Positions 1-52,408 of a stretch of DNA of 64,000 bases are shown one piece after another. Below the pieces are notes generated by a model that saw only the letters and a list, made by a program, of their open reading frames with translations, searched no databases and had not been told where the DNA came from. Source of the DNA: Geosiphon pyriformis uo1 (taxonomy: Eukaryota; Fungi; Glomeromycota); NCBI GenBank assembly GCA_016748015.1, contig JAAOMT010000094.1, forward strand, positions 398,457 through 462,456, in the 5' to 3' direction. The first letter of the stretch is position 1. Each line of letters opens with the position of its first letter. A program made the position numbers and the translations under genes.

Positions 1-3000
1 ATAAATGTTTGGGATCAAAATATTATGTTCCAAGCAGACTTGTTCATTGGACTCAAAAATTTGTTGTGTGGTTGTTGACTTTGGGCAGGTGTAGATTTCC
101 AGATGTTCTCCAAAGGGTGAGATAATAATCAGTTGTAGAAGTCTGAAAATCTGGTGGGATTTGTTCTGTGTGTTAAGAGCTATATTAACTGGAACTGTGA
201 ATCGTCCAGTTGAACCAAAACCTTGGGTTCCTCTATCACTTTTTCCTAATTGTTCTCTTTGATTGACTAGTTGCAAACCCAAAATATTGATTAAGAGTAA
301 ATAAATAGCTTGGGCAATTTTTTCAGCATGTTCGATCTTGAATGGTTTGTCAGTTTCATTTTGAAGCATCACTGTTATGTCTCCAGTATATCCAGCATTG
401 ATTATTCCTCCTCTGACATTGATTTCTTTGCTTGCCAGAGAGGACTGGAAGGCAATTTGAATCATTGCTCCTGGTGGGATTTCGAGTGCAATTTTGAGGT
501 TGATTTTTGTAAGAGATTTGGGTTTAAGAACAAGAGTATCCTTGCCTGGATATCTTAGGTCATATCCAGCATCAATTTCGTGTGCTTTTTCGGGTTTTAT
601 TCTTTGTCCGTTGTTGTTGAAGTATTTGAGTTGTAAGACAGGCTGATTTTAAATAAGGTAAATGGGTGTTGTTTCAATTTCTTCTGTTTTTTTAGGTTCT
701 CCAAATTCAATTTCATTCTCATTATTTTTGCTGGGCAAGAGGATACTAAGAGCATAGCATTCAGGACATCATTGTTCATTGCAAGGCATAATGCATTCTT
801 TACATAGCCTAATGTTCATTTGCTTTAATTGTTGAATTTGAGCTTCTTGGGTCGGGTAGTTGTGACTTGCAATTTGGTGGTAGACTTCTACTTCATCTTC
901 GTAATCGAATCCAGCTAATTCCATAGTGTATTCAATGTATTCTGCTTCCTTCATTTGACAAACATCTTTTTTGGTAGCTCCATTAATTAATGCCATTGCT
1001 AAGTTGAAAATCATCTTGGCATTATGAGAGTAGTGATAAAGTTTGTTGAGAGCACTATTGTATGCTGCATTAAAGGGTGTTCCTCTTTTTACTTTTTTTG
1101 AAATTAATAAAGCATATTGGCAGGTCTGATCGCAGACACCTCCTCTCATTGCTACATCAATCCAATTGCATTCTTCTGGTAGCATATCTCCACAAGTCAA
1201 ACAAGAGGTGTTGTCCCATTTTCCACTCCTTTTTATTAGATGGCCCCATCACTCTTTGTGGCAAGCCTTGCAGTAATAACAAATATGATTTTCATATTCT
1301 TCTTTAGGTGAAATGCAGGCTCCCATTGACGATAGTTTCTTGTGGCAGTCCTTACATTTAAGGGGAATATAGGGGCATTGTTTTCTTGGTTCAGGTTTTG
1401 AGTAAGGTATATTCCATCCAGAGGTTTTAGGTTTAGTGTGTGGGGTAAAATTTTCTTGTTCTGTTTCATCAGTCCAGTTGGACATTAATCCAAGAGCCAT
1501 GAATGTTTCGAGTATTGGTTTTTCTTCTTCTGGTTCAAATTCAAAAGCTGGGGCTTTTTCAGAGCGTTTGTTGAATGTACCACAAATGGTAGGTACCCGG
1601 GCGTGTTGTCCTTGGTAGGAGATTGTTAACTCTTGTGTTTCCCAATTCAGATTAGCATTGGCTTTTTGAAGCCAATCATTTCCGACGAAAGCTTGGTATT
1701 GGAGTGCGTTTATTACAAGAACTTTGACTGGAATGGTGATTCTATCAAGAGTGAATGGAAAATTGTCAATTTCTCTTACTGGGGTCTTTTTCATGCCATC
1801 GGCAGTAATGATTACTGTTTGAGCTGGTCGGTCAACATTTCTTTTTAACTGTTGCATTAACTGGTAGGTAATAATGCTTCCAGGGGATCCACTGTTTAGG
1901 ATCAAGCGAATTGGCTTTCCTTCTACTTCAGCTTCTGTGTACATTACAGTAATGGCTTTTTGCTCATTAGCCGCTGTATTGCTAAGCAAGAATGGTGATT
2001 CATTTGCTTCAAATTCAAAAGGAAAGATATTAGAGAGATTGGCATTTTCAGCAATTCGGGCTGGTGGAATAGTGGTGTGGTTATGAGAAGGGTTTCATTA
2101 TTGTTGTGCTGCAGCTTTACCTTCCGAGAGTGCAGTATGGTGAAAATCCTGTTCTTCTAGCATTTTTAAATAACTGGGTTGAGTATGGTAATGGTTGGGT
2201 CTTGGTTGAGTGGTATTTCGGGGAACCAATTGGTTGTTCAAACTGATTCTACTGTTGTTTACTTGGTATTGGTTTTGTGGTGTGAATTGATTTTGTGTAA
2301 TCAGTCTTCGAGCAGGTACTTGATAATGTTGTGTGGGTGGTTGTTGGTATTGCTGTTGGATTGGTTGTAGGGCAGGCTGATAATAGTTATTTTGGTATTG
2401 GGGTCTTGGTAGATAGTAAGCTGGTGGTGATGGTTAATAATAAGATTGCTGTGGTGGAGAATAATGTTGATTACCCCTATTTTGTTGGTCTCGTTGCAGC
2501 TTTCTGCAATCTCTTTTCCAGTGGTCAGAGATTCCACAGTAATGGCAATTCTGGGGCTGGTTATTGGAAAATGGTGCAAAGTTATTTTGATTTTGTCTTT
2601 GAAGTGATTGATATCTTTGGGATTGTTGTTGTTGTTAGTTGGTAAAATAGTTTTCGACCTTCTTTGTAAGTTGGTCAATTTTTTCCTCAGCTGCTGAGCT
2701 GGTTTTTCTAATTGTCAAATTTACAAGTTTTGTATGATTGGCTTCTTCCATGGCCATTTCGTATCTTTTCGCATGCTGTATGGCAGAGTTTAAATCTTCT
2801 GGCGTGTGTGGACGAACCTTTTTAATTAGTTTATCTTTTAGACCAGCAATAAATTGATCCAAGATTTGAGCATCGGAATAATAATTATTTGTCTTGAGTT
2901 GGCGAATCTATCTGAGAAGTTTGTTGAATTTCCCAATATAAGTCATAACGAATTCGGAGGGTTCTTGTTTGATATTTCGAAAACGATTGCCAAGAGTAAT

Positions 3001-4010
3001 GGAGGTATTATTGTTGGTAAACTGTTCAAGGAAGGCTGTTTTGAAAGTGTTTCAATCATTGAATGGGGCAGCCAGGTTTTCAAACCATTCTCCTGCTGTT
3101 CCTTTGAGAAAGTATGGAATTGTTCTTAACATTCTGGTGGCATTCCATCTATTTGCATCTCCGGTTTTAGTAACTTGGTCGAGCCATTCTTGAGGACTGG
3201 TCTCAATATCTTCTCCATTGAATTTAGGAATTTTTGCAATGTATGTTGTCATTTCGTCTTCTTCATTTTCACTGTCTATTGATTCTTCTTCAGTTATTTC
3301 AGAGTTGTTTTCTTTGTTTGCTGCTGTCTCAGAGTGTTCACTTTGATTTTCAGCTAGAAAATCAAGAAAATTGGAACTAGTTTGAAGGGGTTCTTGTTGT
3401 CTGGTAGGACTTCTGAGTGATGTAAAATCTTCTGGTCTTGCAAATCGATTCAAGGGTGAATTAGGTATTTGTGCTTGTGCAAGTGAAGCTGGAAAAGGTG
3501 TGATAGTAAGTGGAAATTTTGAACTGGTTCCTTGTTCAGGTGTTTGTAAATGTTTGGCAGTTGTTTTCGGTAGTGTTGAAGTATTTGGGGTGGTTCTTGA
3601 ATATTGTTTTAATTTGTTTTTGCCTTTGTTGCTTGTTTCTGTTTCCGATTCAAAGTCAATAGTGTATTGAGACTGCACTGGATATGTTTTTTCACAGTAT
3701 TTGATAATGTTAAAATTAAGTTCATGAAAGTAAGTGGCAAGTGTTTCACTATTAAGGTCTTCAGTTCCCAACTGTAAATAGTGTGCTAAATTATTGTAAA
3801 GGTTGCTTCTAATTTCTGAGATATTGTAATTTCCAAAAAAATAATTGTTGATGTGGTTTTTAATGTATTGATATACTGATTTCTTGACAACTTCAATTCC
3901 GTCTGGAATGTTGAATCTTTGCTTGCAGTGGGTGTAAATTGATTGGTAATACTCTAGAGTTGTTGTGTCTGGTGTGGTCGCTACTTTGAAGTTGTTTTTG
4001 CTGTGTTGTT
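1..4010 (-). pseudogene. gag-protease-Cys-rich-dUTPase polyprotein relic of element A
   Basis: ORF fragments 3052-3771 (MTTYIAKIPKFNGE...QEWL), 2635-2862, 1249-1989 and 769-1200 match element C. Stops are mostly of TGG/CGA/CAA transition type. Confidence 0.9.
205..610 (-). pseudogene. dUTPase domain of element A
   Basis: All five trimeric dUTPase motifs in order: DAGYDL, QSSLA (RSSL in B1), GGIINAGYTG, KIAQAI, RGTQGFGSTG. Confidence 0.92.
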
Positions 4011-4011
4011 T

Positions 4012-4029
4012 CCGTGGGAGAGCACCAAA
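4012..4029 (-). promoter_or_regulatory. Primer binding site of element A
   Basis: Reverse strand reads LTR-CA, TT, then TGGTGCTCTCCCACGG. Same core at 14756-14773, 15815-15832, 31857-31872 and 45873-45890. Confidence 0.85.
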
Positions 4030-5015
4030 TGTTACCGGAGGTTTTTGGTCTCTTTTCTGTAATGTTGTTGATACTTATTTGCTGTGAATTTACGTTTTCT
4101 GGATGTGGTTGAACCTCCAATAACTGAATTTTTTTTAACTTCAAATTATTTTCTATAATTTGAACTTGCTGGGCTTATGAGTGGAATGGCCAATTCCGTG
4201 TCAGTTGCTTTATGTAGTTACATTGTAGTAAATGTCAACTCTTTCCCAGAAATTGCTCGTCTAGAAGCTCACTAAAAATATGTAGTTACTTTGCTGTGAA
4301 AGTCAACTCTTCTACAGGAATCTTGTCTGTAGGCTACCCTAATGATTGTAATAAGAAAAATAAAAGAAAATAAAAGAAATGTAAAAGAAATAGAATTTTG
4401 TCAAGGGAAATGTTTTCTATCCAGGCCTGGAGTTACTAACAGTTTACTGAAATTGGTAGCTAATCAATTTCGAAATGTTAGTTGGTTTTTGGGGATTTTC
4501 CAAGGGCAATAATTAAAAAATTTGGTTTTTTAAATTATTTGGTATTTATTTCTTTTTGTGTGTGTAGAAATGGTTCTAAGTAATAAATCTAAAGTAAGAT
4601 ACATTTTTTCGAAGAGAAAAGCTCTTCTTTTATACAACTTGTCATAACACTATTCTATGAACTTGAACTTTGCTATTTTCTACAATTTCGCTGAACTAAA
4701 GATACATTTTGGTGAACTACAAGTTATTTCTGTAAACTATTAGATATTTCGGTGAACTATCAATTATTTCGGCAAATTTCTATAAATTTTGGTGAACTTT
4801 TGAATGTTACATAGTTCGGGGTATTGCATGATTGATCATCGCAATTAGGTTACATTTGTGTTGTGTACAATTTGGGTTATTAATTAAATAATAATTTCAG
4901 ACATTCTTTGCTAATGTAATAAGTGATAATTTGAAACAATAATATATGCTAATTAATGATAGAAATTATGAGATAATTTCATGCTAAATGATATCTCTAA
5001 TTTCATCTGGTAACA
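4030..5015 (-). repeat. 5' LTR of element A (986 bp)
   Basis: TG...CA termini with TGTTACC/GGTAACA inverted ends; reverse-complement homologue of 30877-31856. Confidence 0.95.
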
Positions 5016-5529
5016 TCAGCCATATAGAGCATTGCTTAAAAATTCATAGCACATTGCTCGAGAATGTGAGCAATCTCGTAGAACCCAAATCATGTATATA
5101 TAGCAGTAGTATCAAAAGCTAGAAAAAGAAACTTCTAGAGTCAGTAGGACTTTCAGAGTCAATTAAACTTGCAGATCATAATTATTAAATACTCCTCTTT
5201 TTAAGGATAGTTGCTATTACTTGAAATGAAATTATATCAATAAAATATCTCTTCAATTCTTCAAATCCATGTTATTATCCACTACTTAACCTGCTGGCAC
5301 AATAGCTCTTAATTATGGCTATTGACAAGACACTTATTTCTTATTTTATTATATTTTATTTTATTTTTCTTTATTTTATTTTCTTTTGTTGTTTACTAAT
5401 TGATTAAGAATTAAGCACTGAGTTATTAACATCAAGAATAGCCTGGTAAAAAACCCAGAAATAAGAGTAAAATTATATATATATTAATGGATAGCTTACC
5501 AGAAGGGCATGACTGTCAGAATAAACCAG

Positions 5530-45890: not shown

Positions 45891-46736
45891 TGTTACAGGT
45901 GATTTTTTGGGGTCTCAAAACAAATAACAAACCTGTAACTTAGTATTTAATAGCTAATATAGTTGGTAATATCTGAAAGTTTTGTAATCTGAAGGTTTTG
46001 GTTTAAGTTCTTTGTATAATAAACAGAAATTCAACAGTTGTTTTAGTAATCTTTTACAATTCTATTAAATTTCTTTTTCAGTATAGTGGCTGCTAATTTA
46101 GCAGAGATGTTCTTCTGGTAAGCTATCTTTACTCTATGTGATTTTTACTCTTAGTTTTTAGGTCTTTTACCAGACTAATCTTAATGTTAATTTAATTAAC
46201 ACTTGATTCTTAGTTAATTAGTAAACACCAGAAAACAACAGAAATAAAAAAATAAAATAAAAAAATAAAAAAAATAAAAAAATTAATCCAAGATAATAAA
46301 AGTTAATATTCTGTTAATAGTCATGATCAAAAGCTATTGTTCCAATGTGGTTAAGTATTCATTACTATTAAAATAAAGTATTGATAATAAGAAATAAGTT
46401 AAGATAGCAAATAATTATTTATTAATATTTGTGGTTTTAGAAGATTGTTTAGATAAAATCTAAACTAAGAGGTCTCTCTTTTCTGCTTTTAATGCTACTG
46501 CTATATATACATAATTAAGATTTCTCAATTCTTTAATTTTTCACATCAAAAATCCTAAAATTTTTGGAATCCTACAATTTTTTTGAGAAGAATTCTGGAA
46601 TTTTGGAATTCTTTGCACAAGAATCCTGTAATTTCTGGAATTCTGCAATTTCTCTGAAAAGAATCTTGGAATTCCATATTTTCTATATCTACTTCTGATT
46701 GGTTAATATATATATTACTATGACTTCTATATCCTA
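45891..46736 (-). repeat. 5' LTR of B2 (B1-type U3); terminal bases displaced to 52398-52408
   Basis: TGTTACAGG start next to the PBS. The missing end (TA)TGAGTAATA is found after the Tc1/mariner element. Confidence 0.88.
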
Positions 46737-46920
46737 TAATACAAATCATTCATAATTATCAAAAATATAGATCAGTTTAAAATTTTAAATAATAATTTTC
46801 ATGTGTTTTTATTTATATAATTATATTTTATTGGTTAATATACATGTGTTTTTAATATATTATTTATAATAAAAAATAAAATTTTATTAAATTTTATATA
46901 ATATAAAACCAAATACAGTA

Positions 46921-49027
46921 TTACAAAGTTTGAATATTATTTAATTTGTCTAATTCTTCAAGAATATTATCTGGAATTTTTCTATGAGATTTATACTTTT
47001 TTATAGCATATTTTACTAATTTTCTACTAAAACTTTTTCTATAAAGATTTATATAATACCAACATTTTCTTGAAAATTGTTTAATAGTTATTAAAGATAC
47101 TAATTTAAGACTTTCAGGCACTGTTTTTTGTAATTTTCTCCATGAATAATTGCATTTATTACATAATAAAATTTAATTCGCAATGAAATTTTAGAAAAAA
47201 AATGCACTTATGTTTCATACTTTCAATTAATTCTTCAATTGCATTTTTTTGAACAAAAAAATCAGATTCCAAAAATATTATTTAATGTGCACAATAAAAA
47301 ACTTTTGAAGAATCTTTGATTTTTTTTTTGCATTTTTGACATTCTAATACTAATTTTTTTGATGGTCATTTTCTTTGTTCTATTAATACTTGTTTAATTC
47401 CTTTAGACAATCTTTAAAGTTTTTCATCTGAATATATTTCTGGGAAGATCATTGATTGTAATTGATTATTTAATCCAAAAAAAGTATTTTGCATCAATGA
47501 TTGCTTTTCATCTGAACTTAAATTCATCTTGCTTGTAATTAAAACATCTTTACTAAATGCTACATGATTAGAGCTATTATTGAAGACAAATACAGCTGTA
47601 CAATCTGAATATAATTTCTCAAAAATTGAAATTGCTTTATATTTAATTTGTTTAAGAAGATGATCTGCTGTTCAATAACTATCTTGATTTATACCAGATT
47701 GCAAATAACATTGTGCCTTTTCTAGTATATTAAAATAGTTTTCTATATTATTTTGTTATAAACATAAATGTCTATCAATTTCAATTAGAAATTTACTGAC
47801 TATAATTAATCTTCCATTTTTTTTTTCTTAGTAGCAAATTTCTATTTTTAGCTTATATGCCATACTTGCCATTATTTAAATAAAAAATGTATTCATTATG
47901 AACTACAAAAACTCTTTTTTTTTCTCCATTAAGTAAGTTAGAATGTATTCAATCTATAAATTCACTTTCATACTTTGACATATATTTTTTATGCTTATAT
48001 ATTTTTTCTAAAAATTTTTTTCGAGATTGCAAGACATTATTTTTTTCATGTCTATTATAATATAGGCCTTAATGATATTGTTAGAATGAATAACCAAGAA
48101 TTTTGAGCCATCTTATTGCAGTTATAAGACTAATAGTTTTTTCTTTTATTATTCCAATATTAGAGAACAATTCATGCTCAATGAATTTTTTAAATATGGC
48201 TGAAATGGCATTAAAGTTTTGGTTTCTAATTCAAATATGACATTTTTCCACAATATCTTCATCATTAATTATTTTAATTATTTTTTGGTGTTTTTCATTT
48301 TTTAATGTTGGAAGCTTATCATTAAGCAACCAATACTTTGCAAGATATCAAATTCTTTATGCTTTTTATACACTATTATCAATAAAAATCTTCTGGGCAA
48401 TTTTTAAACTGGCATTAATTTTTTTATGTCTATTATTATCATTTAACAAGATAAAATATTCAAAAATAGCTCTTTTTTGATTATATTTGAAGACAGTTAA
48501 CTGAACATATTGTTTTTCTAAATGTTTTTTTAACTTTTGCCCTTTTTTTATTTGATTAATATACAAATCAATCTCACTTTTTGAATTGCTTGAAGATTTA
48601 TTAGATTTGGACCATTGTAAGTCTGTAGTTTGAGCATTACTAATATTAAAGAAAGTGGTAATTTTTTTAGTTCCAGCTGCTGCTTTGGTAAATAAACCAT
48701 TTGGTTCATATTTACTATAATAGGTTGACTTTGGTATTTTTTGTTATATAAAGGCCTCATTTCTTAGATAATTGTCATTTTTTTATATTAAACTAAGTTT
48801 TTTTAATTTGTATTTATTCTAATTATGACTTCTATATCTTCTGTATTATTTCATCTACTGTCATTATTGTCATCTCACTTTCTATTATTAATATCCAATC
48901 TGTTAAATTCATTTACTTTAATATTATAATCATTTATTGAAGTGGTATGTTGTGTTTTTTTATATGATCATTTTATATTTCTAACTTAATCTTTAGCTTT
49001 TCTTTTTTCTTTAGAATAAAGTGGCAT
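46921..49027 (-). pseudogene. DDE transposase relic (Tc1/mariner superfamily, fungal type)
   Basis: Motifs TAIRWLKILG, GLYYNRHE (GxYxDGHE), VVHNE..F..NN (HDE), VFVFNNSSNH (FDN), KGIKQVL.E, KFHCELNFI and KKYKSHR; catalytic Asp residues changed to Asn by G>A. Confidence 0.85.
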
Positions 49028-49213
49028 TTTTTTATATGATGTAATGTTAATTTAGTGTGTAATTAGTGCTTAGACAAAATTAAAGGATTTGAACCATGTA
49101 ATGTTATACAACAAAATTGTATCACAATAGAAATAGCATTTTTAACTCAGATATATATCTATTTTTTAAATTTTTTTGGTTCCAATTTAAACTTTAATTT
49201 CTGTTTTGTAGTT

Positions 49214-49854
49214 TTGGATAAAAAGCAATCAAAAAAAGCTTTTTCAGCATTCATCAAACAAAATTTTTTATTAGAATTGGGAAGATTATTTGAGCCAAAA
49301 ATTCAGGTGATATCAATAAAAATAATTACCACAAAAATCTCTTCGACTTATAACAAAAAATTTGAACAAAAAAGTCTAACATTGACAATTAAACAACTAA
49401 CTCAAAAGAAACCCAATTTTCAAATTGAAGCCAATTCCTTAGAGCTAATGAAAGATTTATTGCAAATAATTGTTGATCAAAAAAATAATAGTTAAGAATA
49501 TTTGAAATAGATTTCAATTTTAATATTACAGTTTAGTTGTAATCTTTTATTTTTATATTTAGTAGTTGACAATATGCTGAATTATTTATAGATTTACTGT
49601 CCAAAAAAGAATATTCAGAATATTATGATGTAATTGAAGAGCCAAGATTTTTAAACATAATTAAAGTTGGTACTATGCACTTCTTTTCTATTGATCACTT
49701 AATACTTGACATATGTTTTCTACATCACATCAATAGAAAATTCGAAAAGAATATCATCTATTTATGAATTTAATTAGAACTTGTAATTGATTTCGAAAAT
49801 GCTATGTATTTTAATGATGATTCATGCATTTTTAAAGATGCCAAATTTTTACAA
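49214..49854 (+). pseudogene. Intron-containing bromodomain gene relic (RSC/polybromo/Snf2-like bromodomain)
   Basis: Three exons: ...LMKDLLQIIVDQKNN (to about 49490); QYAELFIDLLSKKEYSEYYDVIEEPRFLNIIK (49563-49665); KIRKEY.SIYEFN..L.LI(F)ENAMYFNDDSCIFKDAKFLQ (49737-49854). Separated by GT..AG introns; two frameshifts in the last exon. Confidence 0.8.
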
Positions 49855-50124
49855 GTAAGAAGTTTATTAGGTCTTTACAAAAAAATCTGAGTTTTATTTA
49901 CTTGAATTAATACATTTCATATATTTTTTGCATTAAAACAAACTCATTAGAAAATATACAACACTAACAAAAAAGAGCTATTCAAGATTATAGGCTTTAA
50001 GACAACTTTAATTCTTCCAATTAAGGTAAAGCCAAAGATCTTTCAATTTCAATCTGATTTCTCTAAATTAACACCAACTAATATAAATTTCTTAATTACT
50101 GTGATAAGCTATTATATATCACAT

Positions 50125-51050
50125 TGTTACAAATGATTATTTGGGGTCTCAGGTCAAATAACAAACCTGTAACTTGGTGCTCAAAGTGATTGGTGATGAT
50201 GGTAATCTGAAGGTATTTTATCTGAAGGTTTTCCAATTGAATTCTTTGTATAATGGACAGAGATTCAGTGATAACAGTTTATTAGTAGTTTCCCAAAACC
50301 ATAGTTTGTCGATTGCTTTCTCAGCTTGATGGTTGATAATTCTCCTGGTACAATATCCTCCATAAGTGTATACCAGTGCTGTTTCCTGATGTCAGTTCCT
50401 CCATAAGTCTTTCAAGAGTAAGTATTGTTTAAGCAAGTTTATTTCTCTATAAGTCCTCCAAGAGTAAGTATTTTTAAGTAAGTTTTATTTCTCCATAAGT
50501 CTTCCAAGAGTAAATTCTTTAATCAAGTTAACAGACAACAAAGAAAATATAGAAAGATAAAAAAGAAAATAAGAAATAAGCCAAGTCAATTTGCAAGTTA
50601 GTATTCCATCAATAGCCGTGATCAAGAACTATTGTTTTAGTATAGTTAAGTATCAATTACTATTAACACTTCATGTTAATAGTGAAGAATGAATTTGATG
50701 TAGTGAATAATTATTTATTTGAGAATTGTGGTAACTAAGCTAAGAATTCTTGGTGTTGATTCTGTCTTTTCTGTTTCTAATACTACTGCTATATATACAT
50801 ATTTGAGATTCCTCAATTTTTCAATTCCTTGTGACAAAAATCCTGGAATTCCTGGAATCTTGTGATTCCTGATGAGAGAAATCTTGGAATTCTGGAATTC
50901 TGCAATTCCCTGTCGGAGAATTCTGAAATTCCTGGAATCCTGCAATTCTTCTAAGAGGAATCTTGGAATTCCACATTTACTATATCTACATTTGATTGGC
51001 TAATATCTACTGACTAATAATACTATATTTCCTATATTTTATGAGTAACA
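50125..51050 (-). repeat. Solo LTR (B-type U3) inside the Tc1/mariner element
   Basis: TGTTACA...GTAACA with a perfect ACAT TSD. Confidence 0.95.
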
Positions 51051-51564
51051 ACATTCTAATAAGTTGTTAAAATATTCAACAATCAAAATTCCTTTTACAG
51101 CCTAGAAAACCAATTCTAAAACTAGATTATAATTTGGTTAAATACACAATAAGTATTTTAGTCATTATATTTCTCTTTGGTATAATTTATTATTTAAATA
51201 TTAAATTTAACCAGAAACTTTTAAAATACAATATTATAGTCATTGAAAGATTATTTGTAAATTCAATATAAATATCTACATTATAATAAAAATAATACTG
51301 GTCAAAATTTTCAAAGTTGCTTACTGTTTCTTATCTTTTATAGATTGTAAAAACAATTTACAGGTTTTTTTTTTCAGATTTGATCAAGTTAATTTTTAAT
51401 CATAAATATTACTCTTATGTTTTATATTTTTAAGCTTTTAATTATTTCTCTTATTAGATAGAACACAATTTATTCTTAAAATTTTACAAAAAAGAAGTGT
51501 TCAAAACATCAGTTATTGAAAAACATATATTATATATATAATACTACAAAAAAAATAAGCTATT

Positions 51565-52025
51565 TATAATTTACTGCAGAATCTATTTATTAAAAAATTA
51601 ATTGCATTAATTTTTTTCATAAATTTTGAGCCATGCTCTTGTTTCAAAGTATAGGAGTTGAGACAAGTAATTAATCTTTTATAATGTTTCTTAATACCAA
51701 ATATTTTGCCCATAGTATTACTCTTGAGCCAACAGTCAATCATGTCACAGTTATTCTAATTTTTGCCTTAAATCTGCTGCTCTCAGCACCAAAGCTGGTT
51801 GTTCTCAATGTTTATTAAGAGAGATACAAAATCACAAATAGAGTGCAAATGACATTTCCAAATTCTCTGACAATCACTCATAGTACTTTTATGATTTTTT
51901 TGATGCTTGGTATGAACAATATTGATATTTGGATTTCTGTTCTAATAATAACAACCGAATATGGTAGTGGTATAAATAGAATATTCATAATTAATGATGT
52001 CGTGTCATTAGCAGAAGACATACAG
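51565..52025 (-). pseudogene. Possible third gene relic of the Tc1/mariner element, unknown function
   Basis: About 140 codons (YEYSIYTTTIFGCYY*NRNP...CQRIWKCHLHSICDF...DCWLKSN) with four stops, all explicable as transitions; locally less AT-rich. Confidence 0.4.
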
Positions 52026-52408
52026 ACTAAAAGATACTATATTTTTATAAAAAAGTGATTATTTAAAGATTAGATTAATATTAATTAAAAGTCTTTCTGA
52101 AAACAATAATACTTTGGTGATTTATCATGTGGTAATGTGACTTTAATAATTGCTGATTGGCTAAAATCTGATTGATCAGCATCCAAAAATTAAAAATTAA
52201 TAATAAAAGTGGCTAATTTTAAACTTTAATAACTTTATAAAATATAATATAATTCAAAAAATTAAACTATAAATGTGAAAGAAAATAACTTAATTTATCA
52301 TATTTATGGTTTAGTTTTTTATTATTATTAAAATTAGAAGACTAAATACAATTTAAAATTATATAGATTGTTTGATGACTATAAATAGTTTGCACCATAT
52401 GAGTAATA

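Follow-up and report, generated by a model that had tools for sequence, protein, structure and literature searches.

The locus considered here raises the question of how a gene segment coding for a bromodomain came to lie inside a cut-and-paste transposon, and whether it serves the transposon in any way. The element occupies positions 46737-52397 of a stretch of 64,000 nucleotides from the glomeromycotan fungus Geosiphon pyriformis (assembly GCA_016748015.1, contig JAAOMT010000094.1, positions 398,457 to 462,456 of the forward strand), hereafter referred to as the window, which is CpG-poor and has a G+C content of 27%. A first-pass annotation, made from the sequence alone, had described a Tc1/mariner-superfamily transposon with a spliced bromodomain gene head-to-head with its transposase, and had suggested that the gene product might be a working chromatin reader used for targeting open chromatin or resisting silencing. 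The analysis described below indicates that the element is probably a decayed copy of an autonomous Tc1/mariner-like (Pfam DDE_3) transposon, which carries a fragment of about 2 kb of an RSC-type gene as inert cargo. In the proposed mechanism, the founder of the family would have acquired some 2 kb of genomic DNA, exons together with introns, from the 3' part of a gene for an RSC-type chromatin-remodeller subunit, and the captured piece would have come to lie with the promoter region of the transposase on one side and the right end of the element on the other. The cargo would then have been copied along as the transposase cut at the two terminal inverted repeats (TIRs) and pasted the unit at TA. 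The founder would have possessed an intact transposase frame and a cargo that was already disabled by two frameshifts in a bromodomain exon and by a deletion of about 1 kb that halved the BAH domain, and a very recent burst would have been followed by the inactivation of the copies through heavy C-to-T hypermutation.

The unit has TIRs, is flanked by a TA duplication, and sits in a long terminal repeat (LTR). The TIRs are about 27 bp long and are kept across the copies, and their recognition by the element's own transposase is predicted. The right TIR (52371-52396) shows 0 mismatches to the consensus given in the first-pass annotation, where shuffled sequences gave an expectation of 0 matches, and the left TIR departs from the family form by G>A and C>T changes only. 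The ends TA-TGGTGCAAAC and GTTTGCACCA-TA are also found in four other full copies, and the flank of copy L023 resembles an empty site, ATTGA-TA-TTGATC. When the flanks of the unit were rejoined, the alignment with another LTR of the same family ran straight over the junction (position 1236 in an alignment of 737-1249), which indicates that the element was inserted into an LTR; the insertion point lies about 13 bp from the LTR end. The earlier description of a TIR pair and TA bounding a unit whose excision restores a host LTR agrees with these results. The accompanying statement that everything inside moved as one piece applies to the TIR unit, which is contiguous in the family, but not to a solo LTR nested within it, which was inserted later (Table 1). 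The nested LTR and the LTR interrupted by the transposon belong to the same family (70-80% identity), so that the order of events at this spot was an LTR insertion, the transposon insertion, and a second LTR insertion.

The family was searched for on the contigs of the 128-Mb Geosiphon pyriformis assembly using three parts of the element as queries. The transposase (left) half gave 47 matches from 141 first-look candidates, the bromodomain segment gave 41 from 90, and the right part gave 78 from 118, which corresponds to at least 40 scored matches per segment, with identities of 81-90% to the window copy. In the other copies the three parts adjoin one another, and the canonical unit has a length of 4.84 kb with TA duplications. 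Thirty-nine other copies were examined as DNA; the bromodomain segment follows the transposase in all 35 of those that are uninterrupted, and the other four break off earlier (L058 at consensus position 1072, L004 at 3028, L017 at 3155, and L039 at window position 49713). The bromodomain segment is a family-wide feature and not a one-off of the window copy, which answers the question, raised in the first-pass annotation, of whether other copies keep the gene. No older generation of copies was seen in the genome searches with the element parts and with the last exon of the cargo.

The decay of the family was measured for 17 well-aligned copies relative to a consensus in which C/T and G/A polymorphisms were read as C and G, hereafter the reverted consensus. 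A plain majority consensus had been tried as the founder sequence; it still contained stops, most copies sharing parallel C>T changes, and it was replaced by the reverted one. Transversions relative to the reverted consensus were found at 0.2-1.1% of sites and T>C or A>G changes at 0.1-0.7%, whereas 18-44% of the C/G sites had turned to T/A, with a load that varied by copy. Changes of C>T or G>A account for 83% of all differences from the consensus. Every dinucleotide context is affected, and CpG is affected most, at 0.53 per site per copy versus 0.26-0.33 elsewhere. The rarity of transversions against the heavy load of C>T and G>A changes indicates that the burst was recent and that the reverted consensus is near the founder. 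The copies were inactivated after this very recent burst by heavy C-to-T hypermutation, and the pattern, noted for the window copy and loci L021-L038, is nearly transition-only, resembling repeat-induced point mutation (RIP). No signatures of RIP were found in Gigaspora margarita, an arbuscular mycorrhizal fungus, or in Mucoromycotina (PMC8647823). The least-decayed copy of the family is C54, and those on C683 and C686 are also among the least decayed.

In the reverted consensus, the minus strand contains a single open transposase frame of 646 codons, compared with six fragments in the majority consensus. The catalytic residues in this frame are D311, D417, and E551, followed by a KKYKSHR tail, and the motifs VVHDE, DNSSNH, and HCELN start at residues 308, 417, and 549, respectively. 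With its transposase frame fully open, the founder element is predicted to have been autonomous. The last two catalytic residues lie about 134 residues apart, which differs from the classical DD34E, DD34D, and DD37E spacings, and the atypical lineage to which the element belongs includes relatives in Mucoromycota and Glomeromycota. The presence of a DDE transposase relic on the minus strand, as described earlier, was confirmed for the window copy, in which two pieces matched the profile of the fungal DDE_3 transposase family using hhalign (E 1e-19 and 7e-20); searched alone against Pfam, the window pieces gave no match above the threshold, only sub-threshold noise. An intact relative from the same genome, L053, used as a query, retrieved 70 proteins from Rhizophagus, Paraglomus, Cetraspora, Gigaspora, Absidia, Phycomyces, and Circinella. 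Pfam DDE_3 (PF13358) was matched by 12 of 22 relatives, with a best E of 2.4e-11, and HTH_28 by only one of the 22, weakly (E 0.0053); the sole solved structure matched was the catalytic domain of Sleeping Beauty, also weakly (E 0.27). DDE_3 has been assigned to Tc1/Mariner in fungi (PMC5751038). Taken with the TA duplication, membership in this family assigns the element to the IS630-Tc1-mariner group, where its lineage stands out for its long D-to-E spacing. An ATG is found close to position 49027, where the first-pass annotation had put the start of the transposase; it opens a separate frame of 104 codons, which overlaps the start of the main transposase frame.

Two further loci bear on the transposase as side observations. 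The relative L053 (G000:C416:35500-40000, 1794-2789) belongs to a different family with the same transposase type, is 38% identical to the window family across 65 residues, and has an intact C-terminal frame of 331 amino acids; it may be part of a still-active element. The best-preserved transposase pieces of the window family (94% and 88% DNA identity, 81% protein identity) occur in the copy on contig C689, where a copy of the last cargo exon at G000:C689:580053-580274 (minus strand) is reported within an open frame of 884 amino acids, on the cargo strand, with one TGA.

The cargo lies on the other side of the control region from the transposase, and its exons were searched singly against profiles rather than as a joined spliced model. 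Exon B of the window copy scored 18.6 bits (E 0.0019) against the Pfam bromodomain profile PF00439, just under the cut-off of 21.7 bits, and exon C of the window copy gave no Pfam match. Five other copies scored 23-24.3 bits, above the cut-off, over only profile positions 10-43 of 84. Among the twelve host bromodomain loci compared, the only clear relative is a gene on contig C728 (KAG9290591.1), which codes for a protein of 1278 amino acids with two bromodomains, ankyrin repeats, a BAH domain, and an RSC4 immunoglobulin-like (Ig-like) domain. Positions 2763-3962 and 4054-4486 of the consensus are collinear with this gene over nine exons (the end of A, B to H, and the last exon), and the splice donors and acceptors of the cargo lie at the positions of those in the C728 gene. 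The exons of the cargo are 50-77% identical to those of the host gene, and the introns have no recognisable alignment.

The cargo corresponds to a piece of about 2 kb from the 3' part of the host gene, covering bromodomain 2, the BAH domain, and the RSC4 Ig-like domain. Homology to the host gene sets in at bromodomain 2 and extends into the beginning of the BAH domain. The cargo lacks host positions 4359-5408, beyond which the homology is taken up again in the last exon. The cargo probably begins within the intron that precedes the bromodomain 2 exon; this start is judged from an acceptor-like tract and from similar exon lengths, and similarity to the host gene is undetectable at that point. 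A divergent, intron-containing bromodomain segment head-to-head with the transposase is, as reported earlier, present, and it is homologous to host bromodomain 2; the segment is larger than was first noted, since it extends to 52058 with BAH and Ig-like exons. The combination of ankyrin repeats, a bromodomain, a BAH domain, and an Ig-like tail recurs in the orthologues of Actinomortierella and Paraglomus, and the BAH domain was not detected in the Calcarisporiella orthologue. Orthologues of the RSC-type gene in other fungi were seen once per species.

Table 1. Coordinates of the features of the transposon in the window.
Feature	Position	Strand	Remarks
Left TA target-site duplication	46735..46736		Right copy at 52398-52399; TA at both ends also in four other full copies
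Left terminal inverted repeat, transition-decayed	46737..46763	+	TAATACAAATCATTCATAATTATCAAA versus family form TGGTGCAAACCATTTATARTCATCAAA
Transposase relic, main frame	46921..48818	-	Window copy broken by many stops; hhalign match to fungal DDE_3 family
Divergent control region	48819..49126		Contains ATG 49025-49027 (minus strand)
Cargo exon A	49127..49492	+	In-frame ATG in the founder (here ATA), lysine-rich linker, first helix of the bromodomain; splice donor placed as in the host gene
Cargo exon B	49563..49665	+	First half of the bromodomain (AELFIDLLSKKEYSEYYDVIEEP); PF00439; 71% amino acid identity to host bromodomain 2
Cargo exon C	49737..49855	+	Second half of the bromodomain, split over three reading frames
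Cargo exon D	49951..50082	+	Linker after the bromodomain; open in the founder
Nested solo LTR (TG..CA, 5-bp duplication ACATT)	50126..51050		Later insertion; absent from all other copies
Cargo exons E-H	51101..51532	+	First half of the BAH domain; host homology ends at 51532
Cargo last exon	51630..52058	+	Relic of the RSC4 Ig-like domain; 142 open codons in the founder; stop position as in the host gene
Donor 3' untranslated remnant, then the element's own right subterminal sequence	52059..52370	+	Host homology about 30 nt past the stop
Right terminal inverted repeat, intact	52371..52397	-	0 mismatches, 0 expected by chance

The state of the cargo in the founder was read from the reverted consensus, in which exons A, B, D, E, F, H, and the last exon are open. 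Exon C has one-base losses near 49754 and 49790, which are common to all 18 copies that align over it. Spliced at the conserved sites, exon C reaches a stop after 17 codons; the only alternative sites lead to a stop at the exon end. The motif ENAMYFNDD, which includes the acetyl-lysine-binding Asn, is present, as the first-pass annotation had pointed out, but it is never read in the frame of the domain's first half, and a whole four-helix bromodomain including the conserved Asn is not readable in one frame. In exon H, the host homology breaks off midway through the BAH domain, two codons ahead of a stop; the domain is cut by the deletion of about 1 kb, and the BAH match of a publicly annotated model, P0072, covers profile positions 2-58 of 121. 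With the two frameshifts in exon C and the truncated BAH domain, the founder could make neither domain, and an intact bromodomain was beyond every copy as well. The fact that the cargo was disabled while the transposase of the founder was intact points to a cargo that hitch-hiked and would have rendered no service to transposition; judged by the lesions of the founder, it would have been functionless at the time of the burst. The proposal of a working chromatin reader does not hold, given the frameshifts shared by all of the aligned copies and the truncated BAH domain; the transposase frame of the same founder is, by contrast, fully open.

Two candidate readings of the cargo exons were considered and rejected. 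A rescue of exon C by other splice sites was sought by eye in the aligned sequences, and each path meets a stop or skips the half bearing the Asn. A third apparent frameshift, in exon G, is a poly-T length difference, and the exon is intact in four copies and in the P0072 model. The window copy has, in addition, a private loss of about 38 bp in exon F.

The relationship of the cargo to the resident gene was evaluated by substitution measures and by trees, for which the cargo pieces in the homologous frame were strung together with X at the breaks. Relative to the resident gene, the proportion of synonymous differences (pS) is 0.77, which is saturated, the proportion of nonsynonymous differences (pN) is 0.21, and the per-exon ratio of nonsynonymous to synonymous substitution rates (dN/dS) is about 0.1 where computable. 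In the Ig-like domain, the identity is 64.8% between the cargo and the host gene, 61.3% between the cargo and the Ambispora orthologue, and 58.8% between the host gene and the Ambispora orthologue. With the first fungal set, the Ig-like tree placed the cargo and the Geosiphon host gene as sisters (98/93 support). After the orthologue of Ambispora leptoticha was added, the cargo, the host gene, and the Ambispora sequence formed a trichotomy with branches of 0.23, 0.27, and 0.43, respectively, and the approximately unbiased (AU) test of the sister relationship between the cargo and the host gene was not decisive (p-AU 0.12). Judging from these distances, the cargo is not a fresh copy of the resident gene, and is about as far from it as the orthologue of Ambispora is. 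Neutral decay since so old a split would have left the fragment beyond recognition; purifying selection therefore acted on the cargo for nearly all of its separate history and was absent only briefly. The first-pass annotation had regarded copies lacking the gene, a position inside a host gene clade, and neutral evolution as the marks of a one-off passive capture. The outcome is mixed, since the copies keep the gene and most of its history was non-neutral, whereas the gene does nest inside the clade of host RSC genes.

Several observations weigh against a cargo that was inert and of foreign origin. About 450 homologous codons are stop-free in the founder, and an in-frame ATG stands ahead of exon A. 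The public annotation has an open spliced path of 290 codons that starts with the second half of exon C and takes in the rest of the cargo (P0072), and a truncated product with the Ig-like domain could still be made. The Ig-like branch of the cargo is no longer than that of the host gene (0.23 versus 0.27), the bromodomain-BAH branch is about twice as long (0.43 versus 0.21), and the cargo exons are far better conserved than the introns. The purifying selection fits a long-lived and recently broken transposon gene as well as it fits a foreign donor, and neither a donor species nor a cargo-free relative of the element was found.

These observations can be explained if the element was formerly a functional two-gene transposon, whose own bromodomain-BAH-Ig protein had been under purifying selection since about the split of Geosiphon and Ambispora. 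The protein would have docked, for example, on RSC or on acetylated nucleosomes, and the frameshifts and the BAH deletion would have arisen shortly before the last burst. The saturated synonymous sites with few nonsynonymous differences, the branch of the cargo, which for the Ig-like domain is as short as that of the host gene and for the bromodomain-BAH part is no more than double its length, and the stop-free codons of the founder with their ATG and canonical splice sites are all as this explanation would have them, and horizontal transfer becomes unnecessary. It demands, however, that a gene borne by a transposon evolved as slowly as an essential host gene across a family-level divergence. 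Neither older copies nor a second cargo-bearing lineage was seen in the Geosiphon genome, and no cargo-like protein outside Geosiphon was found in 1.84 billion representatives or in 90% clusters, a search that covered proteins only, with few Archaeosporales genomes annotated. Moreover, the founder moved at least 40 times with the gene broken, which indicates that the gene was dispensable. A two-gene history of this kind is considered unlikely, and it is distinctly unlikely that the bromodomain-BAH-Ig module was, since about that split, a selected second gene that held the element to RSC or acetylated nucleosomes until the founder of the present burst lost it.

A truncated product might also have been useful in itself, for example, the Ig-like product of 290 amino acids (P0072) or one of 118 amino acids (P0077), acting on the RSC complex without the bromodomain. 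The open codons of the last exon in the founder, which end at the stop position of the host gene, the 77-codon frames of a deletion variant that are stop-free in many copies, and the gene models in the public annotation can be read in its favour. Open frames are, however, expected anyway if the burst is very young, and the P0072 path has no start codon and crosses exon H outside the homologous frame. The last exon has not been spared by the decay either, as its identity to the host gene drops from 64% to 35%, with stops. A useful truncated product therefore appears most improbable.

The divergence of the cargo could also have arisen if the Geosiphon lineage itself once possessed an old paralogue of the RSC gene, since lost, from which the piece was taken, with the element resident throughout. 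The pattern of divergence would be the same as for a foreign donor, and no horizontal transfer would be needed. On the other hand, the assembly contains no second Ig-like exon outside the transposon. The matches other than C728 that could be checked all lie in copies of the element, and the remaining Ig-like exon matches share their lengths and identities with those in element copies. In addition, the orthologues in other fungi, with the same ankyrin-bromodomain-BAH-Ig parts apart from the undetected BAH domain of Calcarisporiella, occur once per species. A lost paralogue is thus a very unlikely source. The explanation that is tentatively favoured over both the long-kept gene and the lost paralogue, at somewhat less than even confidence, is that the fragment was captured in a different Archaeosporales lineage and that the element then reached Geosiphon horizontally, because the burst is very young, no older copies were seen, and no cargo-like protein was found outside Geosiphon.

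Some features of the cargo in other copies and in the public annotation were observed beside these results. A frequent deletion variant, found in L006, L007, L009, L011, L013, L015, L031-L034, L036, L038, and L055, lacks consensus positions 3718-4255. This deletion joins the frame of exon D to the second half of the last exon, the variant is annotated as the 118-amino-acid protein P0077, and a stop-free frame of 77 codons is kept in many of its copies. Three Geosiphon gene models, P0093, P0094, and P0095, contain stretches that are 80-100% identical to the transposon cargo; one of the three has Fe-S domains of the succinate-dehydrogenase type, and one has methyltransferase domains. These stretches are either transposon exons merged into adjoining gene models or exons that have been exonised.

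The multiplication of host gene pieces by TIR elements is known from other systems, and the Geosiphon case is a form of transduplication. Pack-Mariner elements of rice are TIR elements that hold gene fragments and are non-autonomous (PMC8903248), and Turmoil-1 of Caenorhabditis elegans is a case of transduplication (PMC2572040). The Pack-TYPE elements (Pack-MULE, Pack-CACTA, and Pack-Mariner) and Turmoil-1 resemble the present element in that a TIR element multiplies an intron-bearing, truncated, and rearranged fragment of a host gene. However, Pack-TYPE elements are non-autonomous by definition, whereas the founder of the Geosiphon family had an intact transposase frame, and for such elements a parental gene is expected to be identifiable in the same genome at high nucleotide identity, which is not the case for the saturated and, in its introns, unalignable Geosiphon cargo. 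The host, a glomeromycotan fungus, also differs from those of the Pack-TYPE cases. A hAT element of Pyrenophora carries and amplifies a histone H3-like gene (PMC3538342, PMC6710886), and it is similar in that a fungal cut-and-paste element amplifies a chromatin-related gene whose copies were then mutated from C to T; that element is a hAT with a whole small gene, whereas the Geosiphon element is DDE_3/Tc1-mariner-like with a broken 3' fragment of a gene for 1278 amino acids.

Second genes related to chromatin are also known in fungal transposons. Fungal DNA transposons of diverse groups, KDZ and others, are reported to encode TET/JBP dioxygenases (PMC12730594). They are alike in being fungal DNA transposons with a second gene whose product acts on chromatin or on epigenetic marks, the type of arrangement envisaged in the first-pass annotation, and they differ in belonging to diverse transposon groups, whereas the second gene of the Geosiphon element was broken in the founder and has been seen in one family of one species. 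More generally, the accessory frame is functional in multi-gene transposons such as PIF/Harbinger and CACTA, each with its second open reading frame (ORF2), and KDZ with TET/JBP, in contrast to the accessory frame broken in the Geosiphon founder. With the Tc1/mariner superfamily, the element shares the TA duplication, the short TIRs, and one DDE transposase; it differs in its D-to-E spacing, which is 34-37 in the superfamily and about 134 with a cysteine-rich insert here, and in its length, which is 1.3-2.4 kb in the superfamily and, because of the cargo, 4.8 kb here.

In the full-text literature searched, no autonomous Tc1/mariner-type element with a gene cargo has been reported, the only case being the non-autonomous Pack-Mariner of rice (PMC8903248), and no report of a transposon-borne bromodomain was found. 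The element differs from the known gene-capturing TIR elements in that it is autonomous, is of the Tc1/mariner type, and has a cargo that does not come from the resident gene copy. An intron-bearing piece of a chromatin-remodeller gene of about 2 kb, multiplied at least 40-fold in a glomeromycotan fungus, represents a clear and well-bounded case, and the family also provides a clean read-out of a transition-only hypermutation process. The interest is mainly evolutionary: the cargo has diverged about as far as the gene of another fungal family, and the burst is very young. The combination points to one of two histories: either a transposon already carrying its cargo passed horizontally between ancient symbiotic fungi, or the transposon lineage kept the gene for a long time. 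If a selected second gene did exist, the family would be the first known cut-and-paste transposon with its own chromatin-reader subunit.

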